A stretch of DNA of 57,428 nt, filler included, from Platydemus manokwari (Eukaryota), in the NCBI GenBank assembly GCA_037951405.1. It is 5 parts of 5 records of this genome, joined end to end, with 100 filler letters (N's around TTAATTAATTAA, not from the genome) between each part and the next. Parts side by side here need not be neighbours in the genome. Positions count along the whole stretch, not along the records: positions 22,674 to 35,320 come from JBBMOY010033347.1; 4 more parts are not named here. The stretch is one strand, 5' to 3'. Every line of letters starts with the position of its first letter. The stretch's first letter is position 1. Below, piece by piece: positions 22,674 through 35,320 of the stretch. Position numbers and translations under genes: made by a program. The notes below the pieces were generated by a model that saw only the letters and a program-made list of their open reading frames with translations, was not told the DNA's origin and did not search any database.

Positions 22674-25600
22674 CATAATACCGCTAGGGATGCTTTCCCA
22701 CGGTCCTTGATAAATGATATCATAATTATGGAGAATGAGAATATTATCTATGATACTATGCAGTTCATTTATTTCTGTAGACGTTATGATTATTGTACTA
22801 TTGTGAGACTTGGCTTTTTTCAAAAGAGTGACAACATTTTGTTGAGATTGTGTATCCAGATTGGCTAGAGGATCATCAACAATTATCAAACTAGGATATC
22901 CTATCACAGATAATCCCAAACAAACAAGTTTTGTGGTTAAAAGAGATAATTTTCCAATTAATATATGGGAATCTTTTATCAAATTTAATTCTTTCATCAC
23001 GGAATTTGTGATTGATTTTATTTTCTTTGAACTGAGACAGCGAATATTTGCCAACAATGCAAATAATTCTTCAACAGTTAATTCATCAAATAAAGTCGGA
23101 TATTGGGAGCAATAAGAAATAAATGTATTTTGTTTTCTCTCAAGACAATTGAATAATGCGGTTTCATTGTAATTAATACTTCCCAACTTTGGTTTCCTAT
23201 AACCGAGAATCAGCTCTACTAATGCCGTTTTACCGGAACTGTTAGATCCTAGTATCAAAGACACTGAAGTTTCAGCAATATTCCAATTAAATTTCTCGAA
23301 GCCTTTTGAAAAATTAGTGTTGGAATAGCAGAGATTTTGAATTGATATTAAATTCTGTTTAGCGACAAACTCCACATTACTCATTGTGAAGTTTGATTTT
23401 ATCGCGACTTTCCGTGATTGGAAAAGTTTAAAATAAATTGGTGATCTGATATGATTACTAATTAACAAAATAGCCAAACAAAAAACCCACTGAATAAATA
23501 AAATAAGAATTATAAATCCAACTGAATATCCAAGTTTTGATTCCGACATCACTTTATATAAAAATCTATTTCCACACTGTTCATTAGTTAGACCAAATGA
23601 AGGATCATGCAAGTACGATGTTAGACCATTACTAAATGTTGAAGTTGGTATTAAAACAATCAAAAAAATAATCCATAAAATATTATTCATTTTACACTTG
23701 ATTTCAAACGTATAACCGTATTTCTTCAGATATTGTTTGTAGTATTTGATTGAGACAATGAATGAAAGAAAAACCACAGTTAAATCCGAAACGAGAAACC
23801 ACAAAATGATTGATGGACTAAAATTAAAAAGTTCGCCAATCAATGTTTTATAAACCAAATCGCAAAGTCCATACATGACCAGCAAAACGACAAAATAAAT
23901 AACGTTTTCATCTTGTGAAACTAATCCAAAATCGCTTAATAAATAAATAACTAAAATGATAAAACAGTTGAATATGATCAGAAGGAGAATATCTATCAAA
24001 TATTTTGGAAGAAAACAAAGAGTGTAATGATATGTTGCCAATTTAATAACTCTTTTACGATCTTTAAAACTGAACCTATGTCTTTGATTGAAAAGATTAT
24101 TCATAAACACTATAATAGCAAGATACATCAAATGTAGCACGATGTTCTTTTCAATCAAATATTCTGGTTTTTCATTTTCTGTCAGAACACCAATTGACAT
24201 GAAATAAATATTTACTGATTGAATAAAATAGTTCTGTATTTTTTCGAAAACCCCAGCTAAAATGTTTTCATAATTTGATAATAGAATCACTTTCAATGTT
24301 CTCGAATCCATCGATGAGAAATAAATGGCAACTTTTGTTGAATTCTTATATTCAATGGAATTATTACTTGCTAACATAAATAAATGATCGGTAAAATCTT
24401 GAAAACCGACATTATTAAGAATATTCATTGAATAATTGGAACCTAAAATATTGATGATATTTTTTACATCGACGGACGATTCAACAGTTTTTGAAATACC
24501 AAAAGAAACATCATAGATGGCATCCGGGTAGTCATGGAAATGTGTGGAATGCCTATAGTCTACCAATTCCAATGCAGTGAATAACAAAACGGTTAATATC
24601 GGTGCTACAATGGATAATGTTGTCTGGTTTTTAAATCGATATAAACCAGCTAATTGGGCCATGACGAGTATAATAAGCTGGTTAACATATATTCTGCTAA
24701 ATGTTTTCTTCTTCAGATGAATTTGGCTTAACAGTACTAACGATCTTGTTCTAACTTTGTTTTGCTTAACATCAGTTTCTTTGATTATGGATTTTCTATA
24801 TTTATTATAAATTTGATGAAAATAGAAATTAAAATCCATCCGAGTAATTTTTACCGCGACGATTCCACATCTCACAGAATTATGATTTATATCGTTCAAA
24901 ATATTTTCTAATTTGTCTGTTAAACTCTTCGGAATTTGAAATTGAATTTTGAGATTTATTGTTCCTTGATAAATGATTTCTGGATAGAATGATTTTATGA
25001 ACATGATAATACTGTAGTTTCCAGCATTTTCTTCTGTATAGATAGTTAGCCTGTAACCCATCCGATTCTCTTTTCGTAGACATAATAACCTTGATTGGAA
25101 TATGAGTCTTCCATCAATCATTAATATTATTTTGTCAGCACAAGTTTCTACGTTGCAAGCCATACTTGTTGTAACAATTATCGATTGATCTTTTTTCCGT
25201 TCTTTTAGCAGGAAATTGACATTAGTTTGAGCTTTATAATCAAGCCCTAAATAAGGTTCATCAAGAAGAACTATTGGGGAATCAAGTAAGAAAACACCTA
25301 ATATTTGAGTAAGTCGAACAACAACCGGTGGTGACCTGGATAGTTTAATATTAAGAAAATCGTGTATATCCAAAATTTTGGTTAATTTCTCGATGGTAAA
25401 ATAACTGTTTTGATTGTTTTTCTTTTTGCCTTCAATGGACACAACAAGATTGAAATATTCCGCCATGGTCAAAAAATCAAATCTTAATTTATTATCATAA
25501 AGAACAGCGATTTTGGAAAATAATTTATGAAATTTTACATCGATTTTTTCGTTGTCAATAAAAAAGTAACCATTTGTCGGTTGAATGAGACCATTGAGAA

Positions 25601-27257
25601 TTTTAATCAGTGTCGTTTTTCCTGAACCACTCGGTCCGACAACGGCTGTGATGGATTTTTTCTGTGCTGTTATATTGATATTTTTCAATGCATATATTTC
25701 ATTAATTTCATTTTTATAATATTTTGTCAACTTTTTCGTTATAATGCAGCATTCATTAGATTTGGACAAATCTCTACCATATTTGGATACCTGTTCAACC
25801 GACATTATAGATTTCATCGAATAGCTATCAATAAAAGTTAAACTTAGTCTCAGTGTTGAAGTTTTTTTCAATTTATTATTGGTATTTAGTTGTTTTTCAC
25901 TATCTTTCCATTGGTAACTAAAATTAGGAGAAATTACATAATTATCTTGAGAAAATTTCTGATAATTATCGTAATAACTGTCCTGTGATCTTGGTGATTT
26001 CGTCGAGTCTTCAATTTTTGATGAACGGATTTTAAATAATTTATTACTGAAAATAAGACAATCGATTTGATTGGTGATAAAAATAATGATGCAAGATAAA
26101 ATCCAGAACCAAATATTTCCTAAGATAAAAATGATAATAAATTCATTGATAAATGAGCTCTGTTCATCATATTGAGTAGCAAATGTTTCATGTTCTTCAA
26201 TCAATAATAATAGCCAACCCATAGAAAATATTGGAGATATTGTACTCATAAAGTAGAACAAATTTGGTATGTTCAGAGTTGCACCATGACAAAACATTAA
26301 CAGAATTTGTGGACCGATGAACGACAGAGTTCCGCATAATATAGTATAAATATCTAAGTTAATAAGACATATTAAAGAAGCTGTAAACAAACCAGTGTTG
26401 TAAACAATTGTATAAATATAGATCAAAATCTTTGGATCCGATTTAGTTATTATATTCTGATCGTTTAATGCGATCATCATTGGAATAAAAGAAACATGAC
26501 CGACAATACCGATGATATTATAAATAAAAAACAATGATAGAAATTTCATGAAAACATCGTTCTTGTTGTTGATGCTGCATCTATAGGAGCGATTTAATTC
26601 ATAATAATTAATAATAAAACACCCAATCAAAGCAAAAAATAAAACCATATACATCGTTGACCATTCCAATGGACGATCAAAGTTATTGGGCAATCCACCA
26701 ATATAAATTTCATTGGAAATGCTGCTATTTGAAATCGATCGATTTGAGAAAGCAGTACCAATTAAATAAATGGCATTGAGAAAGTTCGACCGAAAAGATT
26801 CAACCTCAATTTTATCATTGAAATCAATTAAAATGGAAATATTAACGTGTTTAATTTCATTCAATTTCATTTCGAAATTAGTCAAATTCGTTACATTGTT
26901 GATAGAATTGAAACAGTAAATAAATATTCTTGATGACATATAATAGGAAAGTATCAAAACAGAACTCACAGCTGAACTTTGAATTCCATTAGTGATTTTA
27001 TCGGCATCAATTAAATGAATTATTTTACCAACGAATGTTGAATTTGGAGTATAGTAAATGTAAATTTGATTTCTAGTTAATAGCTTTTTCGCATTGATGA
27101 TATTCCAATGTGTCAATCGGGGTACATTGAGAAGTATGTGATAAAAATACAATATTACCAGATATCCAATAATCCAGCACAAAGGGAAAATGCAATTCTT
27201 CTTTAAAAACAAAATATTAAAATAGCTGTATGTTTTGAATCTGTACCATTGATACAT
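22674..27257 (-). CDS. ABCA-subfamily-like full transporter, paralog 1; intronless, 3' end lost in gap, degenerate NBD motifs
   Basis: TMD1-NBD1-R1-TMD2-NBD2 layout. Walker A GPSGSGKT and GSNSSGKT; Walker B IVLLDEP and IIVDDP; ABCA-like YCSQYPTLFDELTVEE and GYRL. ATG 27257 aligns with the paralog start; the track start is TTG. Confidence 0.9.
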
Positions 27258-27759
27258 TGAATGGAAAAAAGAAGTCAATGGTTTATTGATAATTTATTAA
27301 TTATTTAAATTAATTTAGAAACCATTTTATAGATCATTAATCGAATTGAATATTTTTTTTAATTTAAATTGTTATTAACAAAATAAGTCGACTAATTAAG
27401 GATGACTATGAGTTACTGTAGATGTTTACGAAAAACTAGGCTACTCATCTATGATAAAAGCTAGTTCATTCATTTTGATTTAGCTTTTTGAGTTGGAATG
27501 TTTTTAATTTCCTGTTTGTTATTTTTAAGTATGCCTAACTTTGTAGCTTGTGTGACTCCAAATAAAAAATAAGATTTAATAACTATAATAATACTTACCT
27601 ATAATTAAATTAATGAAAAAAATTTCAATTAATATAATTTTACTCAATTATTATTTGAGTAAAAACATAAGTCGTTTCCATCAATATTTTTATTCTCTTT
27701 TCAAAATCACACCGTTTGTATTTTAATATTAAAACAAATCTCATTTCTTTATCTAACTT

Positions 27760-29345
27760 CCTTCTTTTTGAGATCCTTTTTAGCCACCCAATTGTTCGAG
27801 GTTTTGGGTGTCCCTGGAAATCAAGAAGAACTTGATATGGACTTTAAAATTTCAAAATCCTGTGAGGACATCCATAACGATCTCCTTTCTTCTTTATCCT
27901 CTGTGGTTCTTTCTTCACTAAAAGTTCTTCTCCAACTGTGAAAATTCTACAACCTCTTTTTTTAGGATCGAATTTCTTTAAGTTTGTGGCTACTGATCTT
28001 AACTGGTTTTCCGTTTCTTTCATGATCTTGTCGTGATGGCTTGGTTCATTTAGTCGTAATCCATGTATATTAATTATTCGTCCAAACAATATTTCAAAAG
28101 GAGAATGTTGAATTGAACTTTGATATGTTGCATTGATGATGAATTCTATTCGCGGTATTAATTTATCCCACACCTTGTTCTTCTGATGCAATCGTTGTTA
28201 CAACCATGTCTCGCACCGTCCTAATCATCCTTTCGGCTAAGCTATTTGCCGGATTCTGGCGTGGGGAGGTAAATTCTTGTTTTATTCCAAAACGTATTGC
28301 TAATTCTTTCATTTCCCTTCCTGCGATTTTGGGGCACCATACCTATAGATCCATTTATCGATGATGGCCTTCAAAATACTTGATTCATCTTGTCAAATAA
28401 GTGGCACTAAGCTTACTAACTTACTGAATCTATCGACAATAACCAACAAATATCTGATTTTAGTCATAAATTCCGCAAAATGCGCAACATCACAACGATC
28501 TGCTTCAGAGGCCCAAACTCTTCTATGGGAATCATAATCTCTTTGGTAAGTCCAGTGTATACCTTCCGTTTAGCACAAATATCACAATTCCGTACTTCAT
28601 GTTCAAAGCTTCGTGACATATTTGGCCAGAAGTGAATTTTTTGAATGTAATCGACCAATTTCTTATTACCAAATATGGCACAACTCCTCATGAAGGTATC
28701 TCGTAAGTTTAACGGAGATATAACGGAGCCGTAATTAATGCATAGTCCTTGATAAATCTTCTGTAATAATTGCATAATCCTAGGAACGATCACAACTGAG
28801 TGATGCAACCAGGATTAATTACTTCCTAAATCTTCTTTACTTTATCGTCATTAGTTTCTATACCTTCTGCAATGACCGTATGACCCAGGAAATTCAATTT
28901 TCTGGTAACAAAAGTGCATTTCTCGGGATTGATTTTCAAACCTGATGATTTAATCAACCTGAATACCTTTTCAAGTATCTCATTGTGTTTCTCTACCGTT
29001 CTTCCATACACTAAAATATCATCCAGATAAAAAAGAACGCCTTTGTAAATCAAGTCCTTGAATATAGTATTCATTAGACTCTGAAAAGTTGCTGGCGCGG
29101 TACATAATCCAAAAGGTAATCTGTTAAAACAAAACTGCTCAGTTCTAGTGCTGAACGCCGTTTTCATTTTAGAATCTTCCTCAAGTTTGACCTGATAATA
29201 TGCTTAGTCTAAATCTATCGAGGAGAAAACTGTCGCTCCAAACACTGAGTCCAATAACGTTTGGATATCAGGTACCGGAAAAGAAAACTTTTAAGTCTGT
29301 TCGTTTAATTTTCTGAAGTCTAAACACATCCTGATCGACCCATCT
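27760..29345 (-). mobile_element. Ty3/Gypsy LTR-retrotransposon pol relic (RT and integrase; RNase H deleted)
   Basis: GSIRMCLDFRKLN, KTAFST...RLPFGLCTAPATFQ, YLDD. Integrase FWPNM...CDIC, IEFIINATYQSSIQHSPFEILFGR. RT lies upstream of IN; stops and frameshifts present. Confidence 0.92.
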
Positions 29346-30778
29346 TGATCATAAAGAGGTCTAATTGTAGCTGTTGTGATTAAGATTGTAATGTTTTGGA
29401 CAATACAATTTTCAGGTCTATTTGTTGATTAATACTCAACAGGGGCATAAATGATCAGTCTTATGTACCTTCAAAGTATGAATGATCTTTTGTACAAAAT
29501 ATTGTTTAGTTGTTCAAAACATCGGTCACTAAGCCTTTAATTGCCAAATACTTTGATAATTTATCAATAGTTATTTTAAATTCGAATTAATTTAAGTTCC
29601 AAATTAGAAGTTCTAGGTGTTTGATAACTTATATACATTTTTTGGCTACTCCGCTGGACATTGGCTATTTATATCTTCATTTTCATTGCTAGTCTGCAAT
29701 TACTATTGAACTTGTCTAGTTTATTTTGGTGATTTAAAACTCATGTTATTTATTTAAGCTGTCTGATTTATTTAAAGCATGATATTTATTTATGTTTTTG
29801 GTTATCTGTTTTGGTTGTTTAATTTTTGTTTTGCTAATATGATTATTTAGAATTTATTTTCAATTTCACTAATTATTTTTATTATTTGATCAGGATTTCT
29901 GGTCCATTTGGTCTCATATTCCATATTTGCTCTATTAGAACATCAATCCCTTTCGGATAACTTATGTTATAAAATCAATGAATTAATATGAAAATATAAA
30001 TCATAATGCTTATTTTGTTCATCATCCAATTTATATCGAGCAAACTGATGTTAACCATTTGGAGTGGTTGGGTTTGCATTCACCCTTTTTGGTATAATCA
30101 CCCAATTTTATATTATTTTTATTGAAGTAGAAAGATTATATATTAACTATCACTTTGTGCATTTGAATTCATTTTTGATTATAGGCATATAAAATTGTGA
30201 TTTATTTGAAATTATGTTGATTGGTCAATGATTTTCCGATATTAAAATACAACCTGTCTGGTAGGTTATGCACCTGTTTTTCTTCTTTTATCTTTTATTT
30301 CTATTTCTGACTTTTAATATTTCTTTATTCAGTAGATTTGTTTAAATAATGTTTTGGTTTAATGTTAAGGTCAGAGTTGTTGATTGATGGTAAAATAAAT
30401 TCACGACTATATTTTAAGATTACTTAAACATTTCACCGCTAAAGATTAAAGTTCACCTCGCTGTTGATGTGATTTAAAAGACATTTATCTCAGATTCTTT
30501 GTTAAATTATCCCTATGGAAAACGAGTTGTATCTTTCTAGCAATAGATAAATGAACATAGTGATGTAATCAATGATTGCAAGAATTATTGAAAATATAAA
30601 TAACTAATATTCTAAACTACTAACTACTTATCGGCTTCAAAGACTCATTCAATGAATAATATTAATATGACATGTACAATCAGAATAAAAATAAATTAAA
30701 TCAGAGTGAATTAATTTTCAAATCATTTTTAATATTGATTCTATTAAACAAATAACATGTCGATATTATTATTAAAGA

Positions 30779-33700
30779 ATGAAAAATATTACGAAATTGA
30801 AAACCTACGGTCGTTTTAATATTTTATTCCTATGTAGAAATTGGATATTTCCCATTGTATTTATGGTTGGTAATGTCATTGTGATTTTTAAAAATCATGA
30901 TTTGGTCAATGTACCACAAATGATCGAATGGCGTAAGTTCAAAATCAAAGATATCATCGATATGACTAATTTATATATTTATTACTATCCTGACACGAAA
31001 ATTACCTCAGACATCATTGATTCCATTCAAGTCAAACATATCAAAAGACCGTTGAGAAATTTTTCTCGAACTAAGGAATTGTTTTTTTTCGTTGAAGGAC
31101 AAAAATCGATATTCGTTTACAATTTCCATTCCATTAACAATTTAACGAATTTCAAAAAATCTAATATTAACATCTCATCAATTTTTGAAGTCAATGTTTC
31201 GGTTATTATTAATTTTAAATTTAAAAGGATTTTGGAAACATATCAATCGAATTATATCAATGGAATCTATTTGTTAGGCACAGCATTTAATAAGGGAATA
31301 TTCCCAGCTGATATTCTTGTCAGTGGATTGCCAGATATTTTCGATAGACCATTATTGTGGCCAATCCTTTACATAATGTTTTTATTTGGAATGATGGGTT
31401 GCTTCGTAATAAACTATCACGGTCTCAACAATGCCTATCAATGCCCAGTGACCCGTAACACAGGCTGTGTCACGAAATTGATTTCTCTGTTATTGATATA
31501 TAATATTATTGGATTATTTACCCATATTTCAATGGTACTTGTTCTGATAAATTTAAAAGAGAAAAATCTTTTACCAAAATGGTCTCATGAAATTATTTTT
31601 TTAATCTTCACAATTACATACAACACGGGCTTATTCACAGCTGCTCTGATATGTCAATTCAATTTCGATATTTATACTGTTTTATGTGGATCTACATTGT
31701 TTATTGCACCACAAATCTTTTACATACTCTGTTATGGAACTAATTTACAATCGACACTTGTGTTTCGATATTTGAGCTTAATTTCACCGATATTTGCAAT
31801 GGGCTGGTTGTTGGCAGTATTAGAAGAATATGAACAATTTGGAATATCCAGATTTTATTTCAGTTCTTTTGGTAATAATGATGTGATAAATATTTCAATT
31901 ATTCCTTTAATTTCAACGAATCTCGCGTTCTGGATAGTTGCTTGTCTAATTATTTTTATCAATAATAAAGTAGGAATGTATTTAGAAAATTATCGATCCG
32001 CTAAAGTTTCCGCTCGTAAAATGAAAAAGAAAAAACCTAAAACAATAAAAATCAAATCGCAGAGTCTGGAATCCCATAAAAATCTTGATTTAACGGCCTA
32101 TAGTGACATAACGATCATTAGTAGCAGTAACCAATCAAATATCAATGTTCAAAGCGGTCAATCAAAAGAGCTTAAAGCATTAGTGAATAATCCTAACATA
32201 AATTATGGAAGCCAAGAATCAAGTGATAAAGATTATAATGATTGTGTTATTACAAAAAAATTAACGAAATTTTACGATAGTTCTATAAAGAAAGGTAATG
32301 GTTTAAAAGGTTTCAACATGAATGCTCCGAAATATTCAGTAACGGCAATTGTTGGACCGAACGGTTCAGGAAAATCGACATTGATAAAGATTCTTAGTGG
32401 TCTCATTCAACCTACAAATGGTTATTTTATAATTAATAATAACAAAATAAAAAATATCAAATTTAGTAACGTATTTTCAGAAATATCTGTTTTCTATAAT
32501 AATAAATTACATCTACCTTTTCTTACAGTGGTTGAATATTTCAATTTTATCATTGCCTTGGACAACAATTCCAAATATAAACCTCATGATATAGTGAGCA
32601 TCATCAAATTAGTGATTATTCTAGAAATAAAAGAATTCCTTTATATGAAACTTAATGCTTGTCCTCCAGCTGTCATTAGATTGGTCCAAATATTGAGTAC
32701 TTTTATTTTCAATACGCCTGTAGTTCTCCTCGATGAGCCTTATTTAGGTCTCGATTACAGAATGCAATGTTCCATCAATCGTCTTCTAAAAGATCGAAAA
32801 TCCCAGCAATCAATAATTGTTACCACGAGTAATGCCAGCAATATCGAAACGTGTGCGGATAAAGTTATTTTAATAGCCGATGGAAAGGTCATATTACAAT
32901 CGAATACCGGTGATTTGATAATGGAAAATAAGATGGGCTTCAAACTCATTTGTTTCATGGAACCGAATGCTGGTGATTATAGTATCATAAGGTTTATCAA
33001 ATCTGCTTATCCTGATATTACTTATGAAGCATCATTTGATCAAACAATTCAATTCCATGTGCCACAAAAATTGATTTATCAAATCGATAAGATCTCTGAA
33101 CAATTGATATTGGATTCGAATCATTTTGGAGTGGAGAAAGTTCAATTCAATCGAAACGATTTCAAACTTTATTTCCATCAGTTAGTCTACATGCATTTCA
33201 AAACCTCCTTCGAACATGATCATCATCAAGGCAATTTAAGAAGGCTAACTCTCAATTACGAAAACTTGTGGAAACAGAAATCCAAAACGATGATTTATAT
33301 CCGACAATTTCACCAAATATTTATGTATCAATTAACGACACTGTATCGATTTCCAAATCAAGTGACATTATCAGTATTTATGCCAATATTATCAGTGGTG
33401 ATAATGGCTACCGTAGCTATGGTATTCCATCAACATTCCATTCATTATTTATATCCCAAAATTGTTCACGATATCGTTTATGGAATTTCTAAAAATTCCT
33501 CAAACAATGCAAATATAAGCAACATTATTGAAAAACTAAGCGTCGACATCACGACAATTAATACCATGGGAAATACTACGTTTCAAGAATTTACCAATCA
33601 TCTATATTCAGAAGCGAAAAACAATTCCATTAAATATAAAAATTCGACCAAAATTGCGGTTTATTTTTCCAATACCAATTCTGGCTCAATGGAAATCATT

Positions 33701-35320
33701 GTTCTATCAAACAATGACAATCTTTTATCGAAAGTATTCGAAAGATTGCAAAATTATTTTATCAAATCCGTCAATATTATTTTCTACGATATTGAAATCA
33801 TTAAAGCCCGACCACGATCGAATTATTTATTGGATAAATTATTTTTACTTCGATTAATGTATGTATCAATTGTTGTTTTCGTCAGTAATTTATTCAATCA
33901 AAAACATCGAATGCAATTCCAAGAACGAGTTCGAATTTTACGATTGCTTACAATTCATTATACGCTCTGTTTCTTACCGAAATATTTATTGGATTTTTTA
34001 CAATTTGTGTTATTCCATTGTTTTCTGGTTTTGATAATTTATTTACTTAGTGATTTGGGATTCACACAAGAGGATCAAAATACTCAATATTTGATAATGA
34101 TTCTGGTGATATATGGTCTTACTGATATTTCCTGCAAAACTATGGTTGGTTCGAGGTTGAATTTTAGTCCATCATTGTTATTAGTTTTTATATATTTTGA
34201 TTTGTTGGTAGCAATTATTTCGCTAGCATTGTCGTTAAAATTTTATTTGATTGCTCTCAAAAAATTCAGCAACATGTATATTTCATTGTGTGGAACAAAT
34301 GTGGAAATGATTTCATTTCTTTTGACTTTATTAATTCCGGCCAAAAGTCTCAGTGATGGTCTATTATCATATTTGGTGAATCCCAAATATACAGTGTACA
34401 ATGAAAAATGCAGTTCCGATGCATCTTTAGCGATTTTGACCGGTCCAGATAGTGTTCCAACTGTTGGGTTTTTTCTTTTAGTCTTTTCGTGTCAGTTTGC
34501 TGTGTCTTTTATTTTAATATTTATTTTGAATCATTCATCTTATCATTGGTTTCGGTTTGTCTTGTTGATTGTCCAATTGAAAAAGTGTTTGTCTTCTTTA
34601 AAATTGCAAAAATCTTCTCAAACGAAAACCAATGATAAAACGTTGATGCATTTTAATGACGTTTCTTATTCCACTTGTAGTGGACTAAAGGAATTCAAGA
34701 ATATCAATTGGAACATAACCAAAGGTTCAACTTCATTAATTTTAGGTTCAAATGGTTCAGGAAAAACGTTATTAATCGAACTTATTGTTGGGTTAAAGAA
34801 GCCTACTTCGGGAAAAATAACTTGCAATAAGTGTGAATATGAAAAATTTGAAATGAGAAGTAAGGTATCAAAGATTTCATATTGTTGTCAAAACCCAGTT
34901 CTATTCGATGGATTAACAGTTGCTGAATTGTTTGTACTATGGGCAAATATTCGTTGTTTACCTTCTAAAAAAGTCTATCATATCATAAAATCAATTATGA
35001 GAGACTTAGATTTGACGAAATATTCCAATATATTAATTGGAAAATTATCTCTTTTAACCACGAAACTTGTTTGTTTGGGATTATCTGTTGTAGGATATCC
35101 TAATTTGATTATTGTTGATGATCCTCTAGCCAATCTAGATACACAATCTCAACAAAATGTCGTCGCTCTTTTGAAAAAAGCTAAGTCTTACAAGAGTACA
35201 ATAATCATAACGTCTACAGAAATAAATGAACTGTATAGTATCATAGATAATATTCTCATTCTCCATAATTATGGCATTATTTATCAAGGACCGTGGGAAA
35301 GCATTCCTGGTAGTATTACA
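30779..35320 (+). CDS. ABCA-subfamily-like full transporter, paralog 2; intronless, 3' end lost in gap, degenerate NBD motifs
   Basis: Colinear with paralog 1 throughout. Walker A GPNGSGKS and GSNGSGKT; Walker B VVLLDEP and IIVDDP. Confidence 0.9.

Follow-up and report, generated by a model that had tools for sequence, protein, structure and literature searches.

The solved-structure relatives closest to the proteins described here are the ABC (ATP-binding cassette) transporters human ABCA3 (PDB 7w01/7w02), ABCA1, ABCA4 and ABCA7. Their domains, transmembrane (TMDs) and nucleotide-binding (NBDs), follow the order TMD-NBD-TMD-NBD, with a regulatory domain after the NBD and extracellular domains (ECDs) between transmembrane helices (TMs) 1 and 2 and between TM7 and TM8, and both NBDs have a canonical LSGG/YSGG signature, Walker B DEP, Q-loop Gln and H-loop His. 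Degenerate ATP sites are found in CFTR/ABCC7, SUR, MRP1, TAP1/2, BSEP, ABCG5/G8, Pdr5/Cdr1, TM287/288 and TmrAB, in which one site binds ATP with poor hydrolysis, its part being that of a hinge or regulator (PMC7756269). In the human full-length ABC proteins only nucleotide-binding site 1 (NBS1) is degenerate, NBS2 being canonical (PMC7756269). Here we describe two neighbouring ABCA-like genes, A and B, of Platydemus manokwari (assembly GCA_037951405.1), lying in a stretch of DNA of 57,428 nucleotides (the window), of which the piece studied is 22674-35320 (JBBMOY010033347.1, ~29% GC). The proteins of A, B and five relatives (P0008 to P0012), together the A/B family, have the domain order of ABCA3 and its kin. 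However, they lack the signature glycines and the H-loop His, their ECDs are shorter, and their TMDs are too divergent for the Pfam family ABC2_membrane_3. The substitutions resemble those of the proteins with one degenerate site (Glu to Asp, a lost H-loop His, a non-consensus partner signature), but those proteins keep one canonical hydrolytic site, whereas the A/B family deviates in both and is of the ABCA type, another subfamily and TMD fold class. On balance, the comparisons make it probable that the family is an ABCA derivative for which ATP, bound but hydrolysed poorly or not at all, is a ligand or structural cofactor.

The two genes are arranged head to head, 3.5 kb apart.

22674..27257, minus strand: gene A, an ABCA-like full transporter (TMD1-NBD1-R1-TMD2-NBD2), assigned from its open reading frame (ORF) and translation, two ABC_tran domains and an N-terminus that aligns with those of B and P0008.
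30779..35320, plus strand: gene B, an ABCA-like full transporter of 1514 codons, assigned from its ORF, two ABC_tran domains and a best solved-structure match to ABCA3 (7w01).

Gene A comprises 1528 codons from its first ATG (27257) to the piece edge at 22674; the mechanical ORF begins at a TTG at 27278. Neither ORF is interrupted in its more than 1500 codons, and the proteins share 45% identity across their full length, so that the long open frames despite divergence reported by an earlier reading of the sequence alone (the sequence-only reading) are borne out. Pfam finds two ABC_tran domains in each protein. The piece edges truncate both genes at one and the same homologous column, and their stop codons and the R2 domain lie beyond it. 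The relatives extend ~85-105 residues past the cut point, which is the R2 domain, seen in P0008-P0010 and P0012 only.

The motifs of the ATP sites are listed below.

32354..32377, plus strand: NBD1 Walker A of B (GPNGSGKS), Lys kept, family mean pairwise identity 0.85; in A GPSGSGKT, 25614-25637, minus strand.
32489..32509, plus strand: NBD1 Q-loop of B (VFYNNKL), Gln replaced by Asn; in A by Asp, 25485-25505, minus strand.
32651..32683, plus strand: NBD1 signature region of B (LNACPPAVIRL); in A LSRSPPVVVRL, 25311-25343, minus strand.
32720..32755, plus strand: NBD1 Walker B and D-loop of B (VVLLDEPYLGLD), catalytic Glu (LLDEP) and D-loop Asp kept, family identity 0.73; in A 25239-25274, minus strand.
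32810..32839, plus strand: NBD1 H-loop region of B (SIIVTTSNAS), His replaced by Ser (TTS); in A 25155-25184, minus strand.
34745..34768, plus strand: NBD2 Walker A of B (GSNGSGKT), Lys kept; in A GSNSSGKT, 23226-23249, minus strand.
34874..34897, plus strand: NBD2 Q-loop of B (ISYCCQNP), Gln kept; in A 23097-23120, minus strand.
35042..35080, plus strand: NBD2 signature region (LSLLT) of B (KLSLLTTKLVCLG), L-S kept and G-G replaced by L-L; in A the identical peptide, 22914-22952, minus strand; inside a gene conversion tract (see below).
35105..35140, plus strand: NBD2 Walker B and D-loop (VDDP) of B (LIIVDDPLANLD), catalytic Glu replaced by Asp; in A 22854-22889, minus strand.
35195..35230, plus strand: NBD2 H-loop region (ITSTE) of B (STIIITSTEINE), His replaced by Thr; in A 22764-22799, minus strand.

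Every residue named by the sequence-only reading for the Walker A lysines (kept), the NBD1 Q-loop Gln (absent), the NBD2 VDDP and the switch His (lost in both NBDs) is found as described. Its account of the signatures needs a correction of register. It had placed the NBD1 signature at LSRSP/LNACP, three residues upstream of the true equivalent of LSGG, which is SPPV in A and CPPA in B as measured by the ungapped distance back from Walker B; a MAFFT alignment against 131 ABCA-like NBD1s agrees. The loss itself stands, the NBD2 signature being LSLLT and no SGG occurring in either NBD of A or B, whichever register is used for NBD1. Both NBDs of A and B retain the Walker B Asp, the D-loop Asp and an aromatic A-loop residue, and across all family members both NBDs retain the lysine of Walker A and the aspartates of Walker B and the D-loop. 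Both composite sites are thus without several catalytic elements, with the nucleotide-binding elements retained.

The same losses recur throughout the family. An exhaustive search of residues 315-1514 of B against 1.84 billion representative proteins found exactly five family members, followed by a gap down to ordinary ABCA proteins with matches in the NBDs only.

P0008: 1601 aa, 42% identical to B.
P0009: 1585 aa, 39% identical to B.
P0010: 1532 aa, 28% identical to B.
P0011: fragment of NBD1 and R1, 49% identical to B.
P0012: fragment of NBD2 and R2, 50% identical to B.

All five are singletons with UniParc accessions only. Exact look-ups of P0008 and of a partial product of B gave no entry. 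Word-index protein searches with B and P0008 as queries returned ordinary ABCA NBD matches only, with no family member and no closer named kin, and a scan of a metagenome collection with an NBD2 pattern gave generic ABC NBDs only, at no more than 31% identity. None of the five relatives has a signature glycine in either NBD or a Gln in the NBD1 Q-loop. Their H-loops carry Ser or Cys in NBD1 and Thr, Ser or Leu in NBD2, and their NBD2 Walker B reads DDP, except for DNP in P0012. The catalytic Glu of NBD1 is kept in A, B, P0009 and P0011 and is Asp (DDP) in P0008 and P0010. The Q-loop Gln of NBD2 is present in four of the six family members, with His in P0008 and Glu in P0010. The five relatives therefore provide an independent replication of the losses that the comparison of A with B cannot supply. 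On these alignments and the trees described below, the degeneracy is ancestral to a family that has diverged to 28-50% identity, several old lineages having each retained the pattern.

The rarity of the pattern was assessed against 131 other two-NBD proteins, mostly from the top 150 of the exhaustive search (those most similar to B), together with some word-search matches. At the NBD1 Q-loop position the family has D/N/E/D/D/E, where 124 of the 131 have Gln; at the NBD1 H-loop position it has S/S/S/S/C/S (His in 114 of 131); at the catalytic Glu position of NBD2 it has D/D/D/D/D/N (Glu in 129 of 131); and at the NBD2 H-loop position it has T/T/T/S/S/L (His in 123 of 131). Seven key positions were then scored per composite site, namely the Walker A Lys, Q-loop Gln, Walker B Glu and H-loop His and the Ser, Gly and Gly of the partner signature. 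All 14 positions are canonical in 94 of the 131 proteins. Another six have two or more deviant positions in one site only, and eight have two or more in both sites. A and B deviate at four of seven positions in site 1 and five of seven in site 2. Similarly, every full-length family member is deviant at 4-5 of seven in site 1 and 4-6 of seven in site 2, neither site being canonical. The motif deviation of A and B exceeds the chance expectation within the ABCA-like set.

The eight both-site deviants are P0016, P0053, P0063, P0031, P0153, P0064, P0132 and P0087. Seven are from arthropods: three belong to Drosophila (D. grimshawi GH11878 and one that bears the name 'ABCA17' are among them), and Musca, Trichogramma, a mite and a tick contribute one each. 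The eighth, P0087, is a Logan protein. Like A and B they are full-length and ABCA-like, and the GH11878 cluster is the top language-model feature match for B. They differ from the A/B family in that they match it only in the NBDs, at ~25-28% identity, and in that the Drosophila proteins mostly keep the second signature Gly and, in two of the three, the NBD2 Glu, both of which the A/B family lacks. No characterisation of these arthropod proteins was found in the retrieved literature, and together they look like a set of ABCA-like proteins that has so far gone unstudied. A vertebrate ABCA6-like group deviates mildly and in site 1 only, in agreement with the review finding that the degenerate site of human full-length ABC proteins is always NBS1 (PMC7756269).

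Comparison of the two genes showed that A and B are real, long-maintained genes under purifying selection. Whole-gene values are 0.35 for the proportion of nonsynonymous differences (pN) and 0.65, a saturated value, for that of synonymous differences (pS), and pN is well below pS over the NBDs and the transmembrane cores. By a rough estimate, stop codons make up ~8% of random codons in DNA of 29% GC, which excludes two chance ORFs of 1500 codons. The earlier proposal that these are selected proteins is thereby upheld. The dN/dS comparison proposed with it gives an omega of about 0.3 or less, a bound only since dS is saturated. The identity of B to its relatives is 47-55% in the NBDs, 36-48% in the transmembrane cores and 11-35% in the linkers (P0010, whose transmembrane cores are 23-26% identical, was left out, as was the 3' half of NBD2 with its conversion tract).

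Conservation within the ATP sites, measured as mean pairwise identity within the family with A left out, is uneven:

Walker A: NBD1 0.85, NBD2 0.68.
Walker B and D-loop: NBD1 0.73, NBD2 0.70.
Q-loop: NBD1 0.19, NBD2 0.46.
Signature equivalent: NBD1 0.36, NBD2 0.43.
H-loop: NBD1 0.44, NBD2 0.61.

The background mean identity is 0.40 for the NBDs and 0.32 for the whole protein. The positions of the Q-loop, the signature and the NBD1 H-loop are at or below the NBD average. Walker A and the Walker B and D-loop segment are the best conserved motifs, indicating that nucleotide binding remains under selection, to which the positions once catalytic are much less subject. One part of ECD1 (30929-31228, B residues 51-150) is nearly neutral in comparison with A (pS 0.50, pN 0.46), which may reflect relaxed constraint or diversifying selection on an exposed domain.

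Profile comparisons and structure prediction place the family in the ABCA lineage. The best solved-structure relatives are ABCA3, ABCA4, ABCA7 and ABCA1, and the match continues past NBD1 into R1. The family profile matches ABCA3 in a single colinear alignment over residues 705-1700, from the end of NBD1 through R1, TMD2 and NBD2 to R2, with a whole-sequence E value of 1e-72. An hhalign comparison of the N-terminal half with 30 ABCA N-terminal halves gave a probability of 100 and an E value of 3.6e-49, covering TM4-6, the extracellular-helix region, NBD1 and R1. ABC2_membrane_3 has no Pfam match in A, B or P0008-P0010, although the profile alignment reaches TMD2 and the second half of TMD1 of ABCA proteins, and NCBIfam returned only sub-threshold matches to bacterial NBD families. 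Hydropathy gives 6+6 TM helices in the order TM1, TM2-6, NBD1, TM7, TM8-12 and NBD2, and the helices of an AlphaFold2 model concur. The ECDs, which contain N-glycosylation sequons, measure ~155 aa for ECD1 (B residues 40-192, between TM1 and TM2) and ~130 aa for ECD2 (B residues 885-1015, between TM7 and TM8) by hydropathy. They are shorter than those of ABCA1 and ABCA4, in line with the sequence-only reading, and ECD1 is predicted to be a mixed alpha/beta domain. The model of B residues 1-800, built with an alignment of 89 sequences, has a mean predicted local distance difference test (pLDDT) score of 78.6 and a predicted template modelling score of 0.72. Its top fold matches are ABCA3, ABCA4, ABCA1 and ABCA7 over 750-890 columns, a partly circular result as the alignment contains ABCA homologues; the six-sequence family alignment alone gave a mean pLDDT of 44, too low for a fold search. 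From these profile, topology and model comparisons, A, B and their relatives appear to form a small and very divergent branch of the ABCA lineage. The phylogeny with ABCA families proposed alongside the first reading recovers the family as monophyletic (100), but the point of attachment within ABCA shifts between long branches with taxon sampling. A placement beside the degenerate ABCAs of Diptera was considered and rejected as unreliable: the NBD tree joins the family with the Drosophila and Musca proteins (Shimodaira-Hasegawa-like approximate likelihood ratio 99), but once these are removed it attaches to another long branch, the next one, and the grouping is probably long-branch attraction.

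The relationship between A and B changes abruptly near their 3' ends. In Nei-Gojobori sliding windows, pS is ~0.5-0.87 along the genes, that is, saturated, whereas the last ~100 codons show a pS of 0.15 and 93% nucleotide identity. The switch to high identity is sharp and lies ~300 nt from the piece ends; elsewhere, over ~4.2 kb, the genes share only ~60% of their nucleotides. The segment is part of a terminal inverted repeat.

34874..35318, unstranded: right arm of a terminal inverted repeat identified by a repeat finder, the left arm being 22676-23120; 445 nt, 85% complementary overall.

The core of the repeat (~22686-22978 and ~35016-35308) is ~93% identical. The tract includes the signature, Walker B and H-loop of NBD2. 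When it is removed, the tree groups B with P0008 (support 85/90) and a clade of A and B is rejected (approximately unbiased test, p 0.004), whereas the NBD-only tree, which includes it, makes A and B sisters. The trees and the sliding windows thus indicate that A and B are neighbouring, non-sister paralogs with 3' ends homogenised by gene conversion, and it is the grouping of B with P0008 outside the tract that points to several old lineages having kept the motif pattern. Because of the conversion, the NBD2 signature, Walker B and H-loop shared by A and B count as one observation. The claim that the losses are seen in both paralogs accordingly shrinks to a single instance for these three. An independent set of contigs, those of one public run (X1), possibly of the source sample, cover gene B without differences and contain both 3' variants at an equal depth of ~13 each. 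A 489-nt contig of this run extends past 35318. Past the piece, the repeat and with it the conversion tract probably extend into the parts that encode R2, which is probably why the contig ends on both sides.

In ABC proteins, catalysis and contact with the gamma-phosphate fall to the Ser and Gly of the signature, the H-loop His, the Walker B Glu and the Q-loop Gln, and known degenerate ABC sites combine tight ATP binding with poor hydrolysis. Poor hydrolysis is expected for A and B because they are without the signature glycines, the switch His and the NBD1 Q-loop Gln and carry Asp in place of the NBD2 Glu. Both composite sites have thereby lost what positions and attacks the gamma-phosphate. 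Each NBD should still bind ATP, and hydrolysis, as judged from ABC enzymology, would be very slow or absent. The clamp from signature to ATP that closes the NBD dimer would be weakened. ATP would then serve as a ligand or structural cofactor in a membrane protein that is nucleotide-dependent rather than ATP-driven, and the candidate roles are those of an equilibrative lipid facilitator, a lipid-binding receptor or scaffold, or a regulator, not those of a primary active pump. For the earlier suggestion of proteins that bind but may not hydrolyse ATP, the recurrence of the losses in five relatives and the superior conservation of the binding motifs speak in favour; loss of hydrolysis would follow from the motifs, and sensor, scaffold and channel are candidate roles.

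Several points weigh against this reading. In A, B, P0009 and P0011 the Walker B Glu of site 1 is intact, and the partner NBD2 signature still has its Leu-Ser; a weak ATPase at site 1 would be compatible with this. Asp at the catalytic position sustains slow hydrolysis in some ABC proteins. The H-loop stretch of NBD2 is conserved (0.61) without its His, which could reflect a replacement chemistry, and a generally fast-evolving proteome may contribute to the divergence. The selection estimate is a bound, as noted, and the 3' ends and stop codons of A and B lie outside the piece. A search of public sequencing runs found one DNA run only and no RNA run carrying the sequence of A or B. Finally, deviation in both sites is, given the eight proteins above, rare in ABCA but not unique to this family.

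These points bear on three other explanations. The proteins could still be ATP-driven ABCA lipid transporters with slow hydrolysis, probably at site 1, in which an Asp or Glu base is combined with Ser or Thr in place of His and the motif changes are lineage-specific drift; we consider this rather unlikely, though it is the main rival. It fits with LLDEP in NBD1 of A, B, P0009 and P0011, with the L-S of the NBD2 signature in all members, with NBDs that are the most conserved domains, with a complete ABCA architecture that preserves R1 (and R2 in the relatives) and with transmembrane cores that are 36-48% conserved among family members (23-26% for P0010). However, site 1 has also lost its Q-loop Gln and H-loop His along with the two glycines of the signature, and the NBD1 Glu is gone as well in P0008 and P0010. 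If the replacement residues had taken over catalysis, conservation at the catalytic positions would be expected, but it equals the NBD background at best and at some of them falls below it. Human full-length ABC proteins, moreover, retain a canonical NBS2 (PMC7756269). The family pattern as a whole also counts against ATP-driven transport: we know of no characterised ABC transporter that works with so many losses in both sites.

That A and B are decaying or functionless copies, either young pseudogenes or relaxed members of a rapidly evolving family whose motifs were lost with constraint, is very improbable. The missing RNA runs, the very few relatives found in searches, the near-neutral part of ECD1 (B residues 51-150) and a transposon remnant adjoining the genes would all agree with decay. 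However, two reading frames, each stop-free over more than 1500 codons at 29% GC, persist despite saturated synonymous divergence, pN is well under pS in the NBDs and transmembrane cores, the architecture and the Walker A, Walker B and D-loop motifs are common to five relatives at 28-50% identity, and conservation tracks function, decreasing from NBDs to TMDs to linkers. An assembly artefact, a chimeric or palindromic contig in which the second paralog is not an independent sequence, is hardly credible. Such a contig might end, as this one does, at the same homologous column of A and B inside a 93% inverted repeat, but ~4.2 kb per gene is only ~60% identical at the nucleotide level, the public-run contigs cover B without differences and hold both 3' variants at ~13 depth each, and assemblers are expected to break contigs at repeats. 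An ABCA derivative that binds ATP and turns it over poorly or not at all is thus the reading that we retain.

A further step is possible and is put forward tentatively: a full-length lineage would have turned pseudo-ATPase at both sites and become a nucleotide-gated lipid facilitator, a channel-like protein or a receptor, and, taken with the arthropod ABCAs, the power stroke would have been lost repeatedly within ABCA. Literature searches turned up no description of a full-length ABC transporter in which both sites are degenerate, which is weak evidence of absence. Current models of ABC exporters presume at least one hydrolytic site, and a canonical partner accompanies every degenerate site so far known. 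The A/B family would therefore be a natural test of what ATP binding alone does in an ABCA scaffold and possibly a naturally trapped state for structural work. Automated labels of 'ABCA transporter' can mask proteins that probably do not pump.

The arrangement of the genes has a described parallel in Trichomonas vaginalis, in which ABCA genes occur as inverted pairs in an AT-rich genome, one partner having a degenerate signature (PMC3378599). The T. vaginalis proteins are half transporters (TMD-NBD) of 478-919 aa that pair a canonical with a degenerate partner (PMC3378599), whereas A and B are full transporters with both NBDs degenerate. Neither a T. vaginalis protein nor any other named protein was among the family members in the protein searches. 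A weak inverted match of 57 nt (27184-27240 against 30796-30852, 70%) spans the first ~20 codons of A and B; it is a conserved N-terminal peptide (..FNILFL..N.IFP..) and no regulatory palindrome.

The space between the two genes is partly occupied by a retroelement, and no tRNA or Rfam features are present in the piece (22674-35320).

27768..29441, minus strand: decayed Ty3/gypsy-like retrotransposon pol remnant between A and B, identified from ORFs and the Pfam families RVT_1, Integrase_H2C2 and rve_3.

The remnant, which is outside the ABC genes themselves, contains the C-terminal part of the reverse transcriptase, the integrase zinc finger (H2C2) and a fragment of the integrase core in differing frames; an RNase H segment was not found in it by Pfam and ORF examination. 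Its reverse transcriptase fragment matched two ENA fragments. In the 5' region and promoter of gene B, a contig of run X1 (depth 10) links 31158 back to 29864 through 38 unrelated letters, which may represent a structural variant, a local duplication or a graph artefact. At the edge of the pol remnant, loose contig ends occur at 29402-29442 in the public contig set, and the depth in run X1 over 29400-29597 is ~121 compared with ~14 for the ABC genes (~8x), the retroelement being repeated roughly 8-fold within that contig set.

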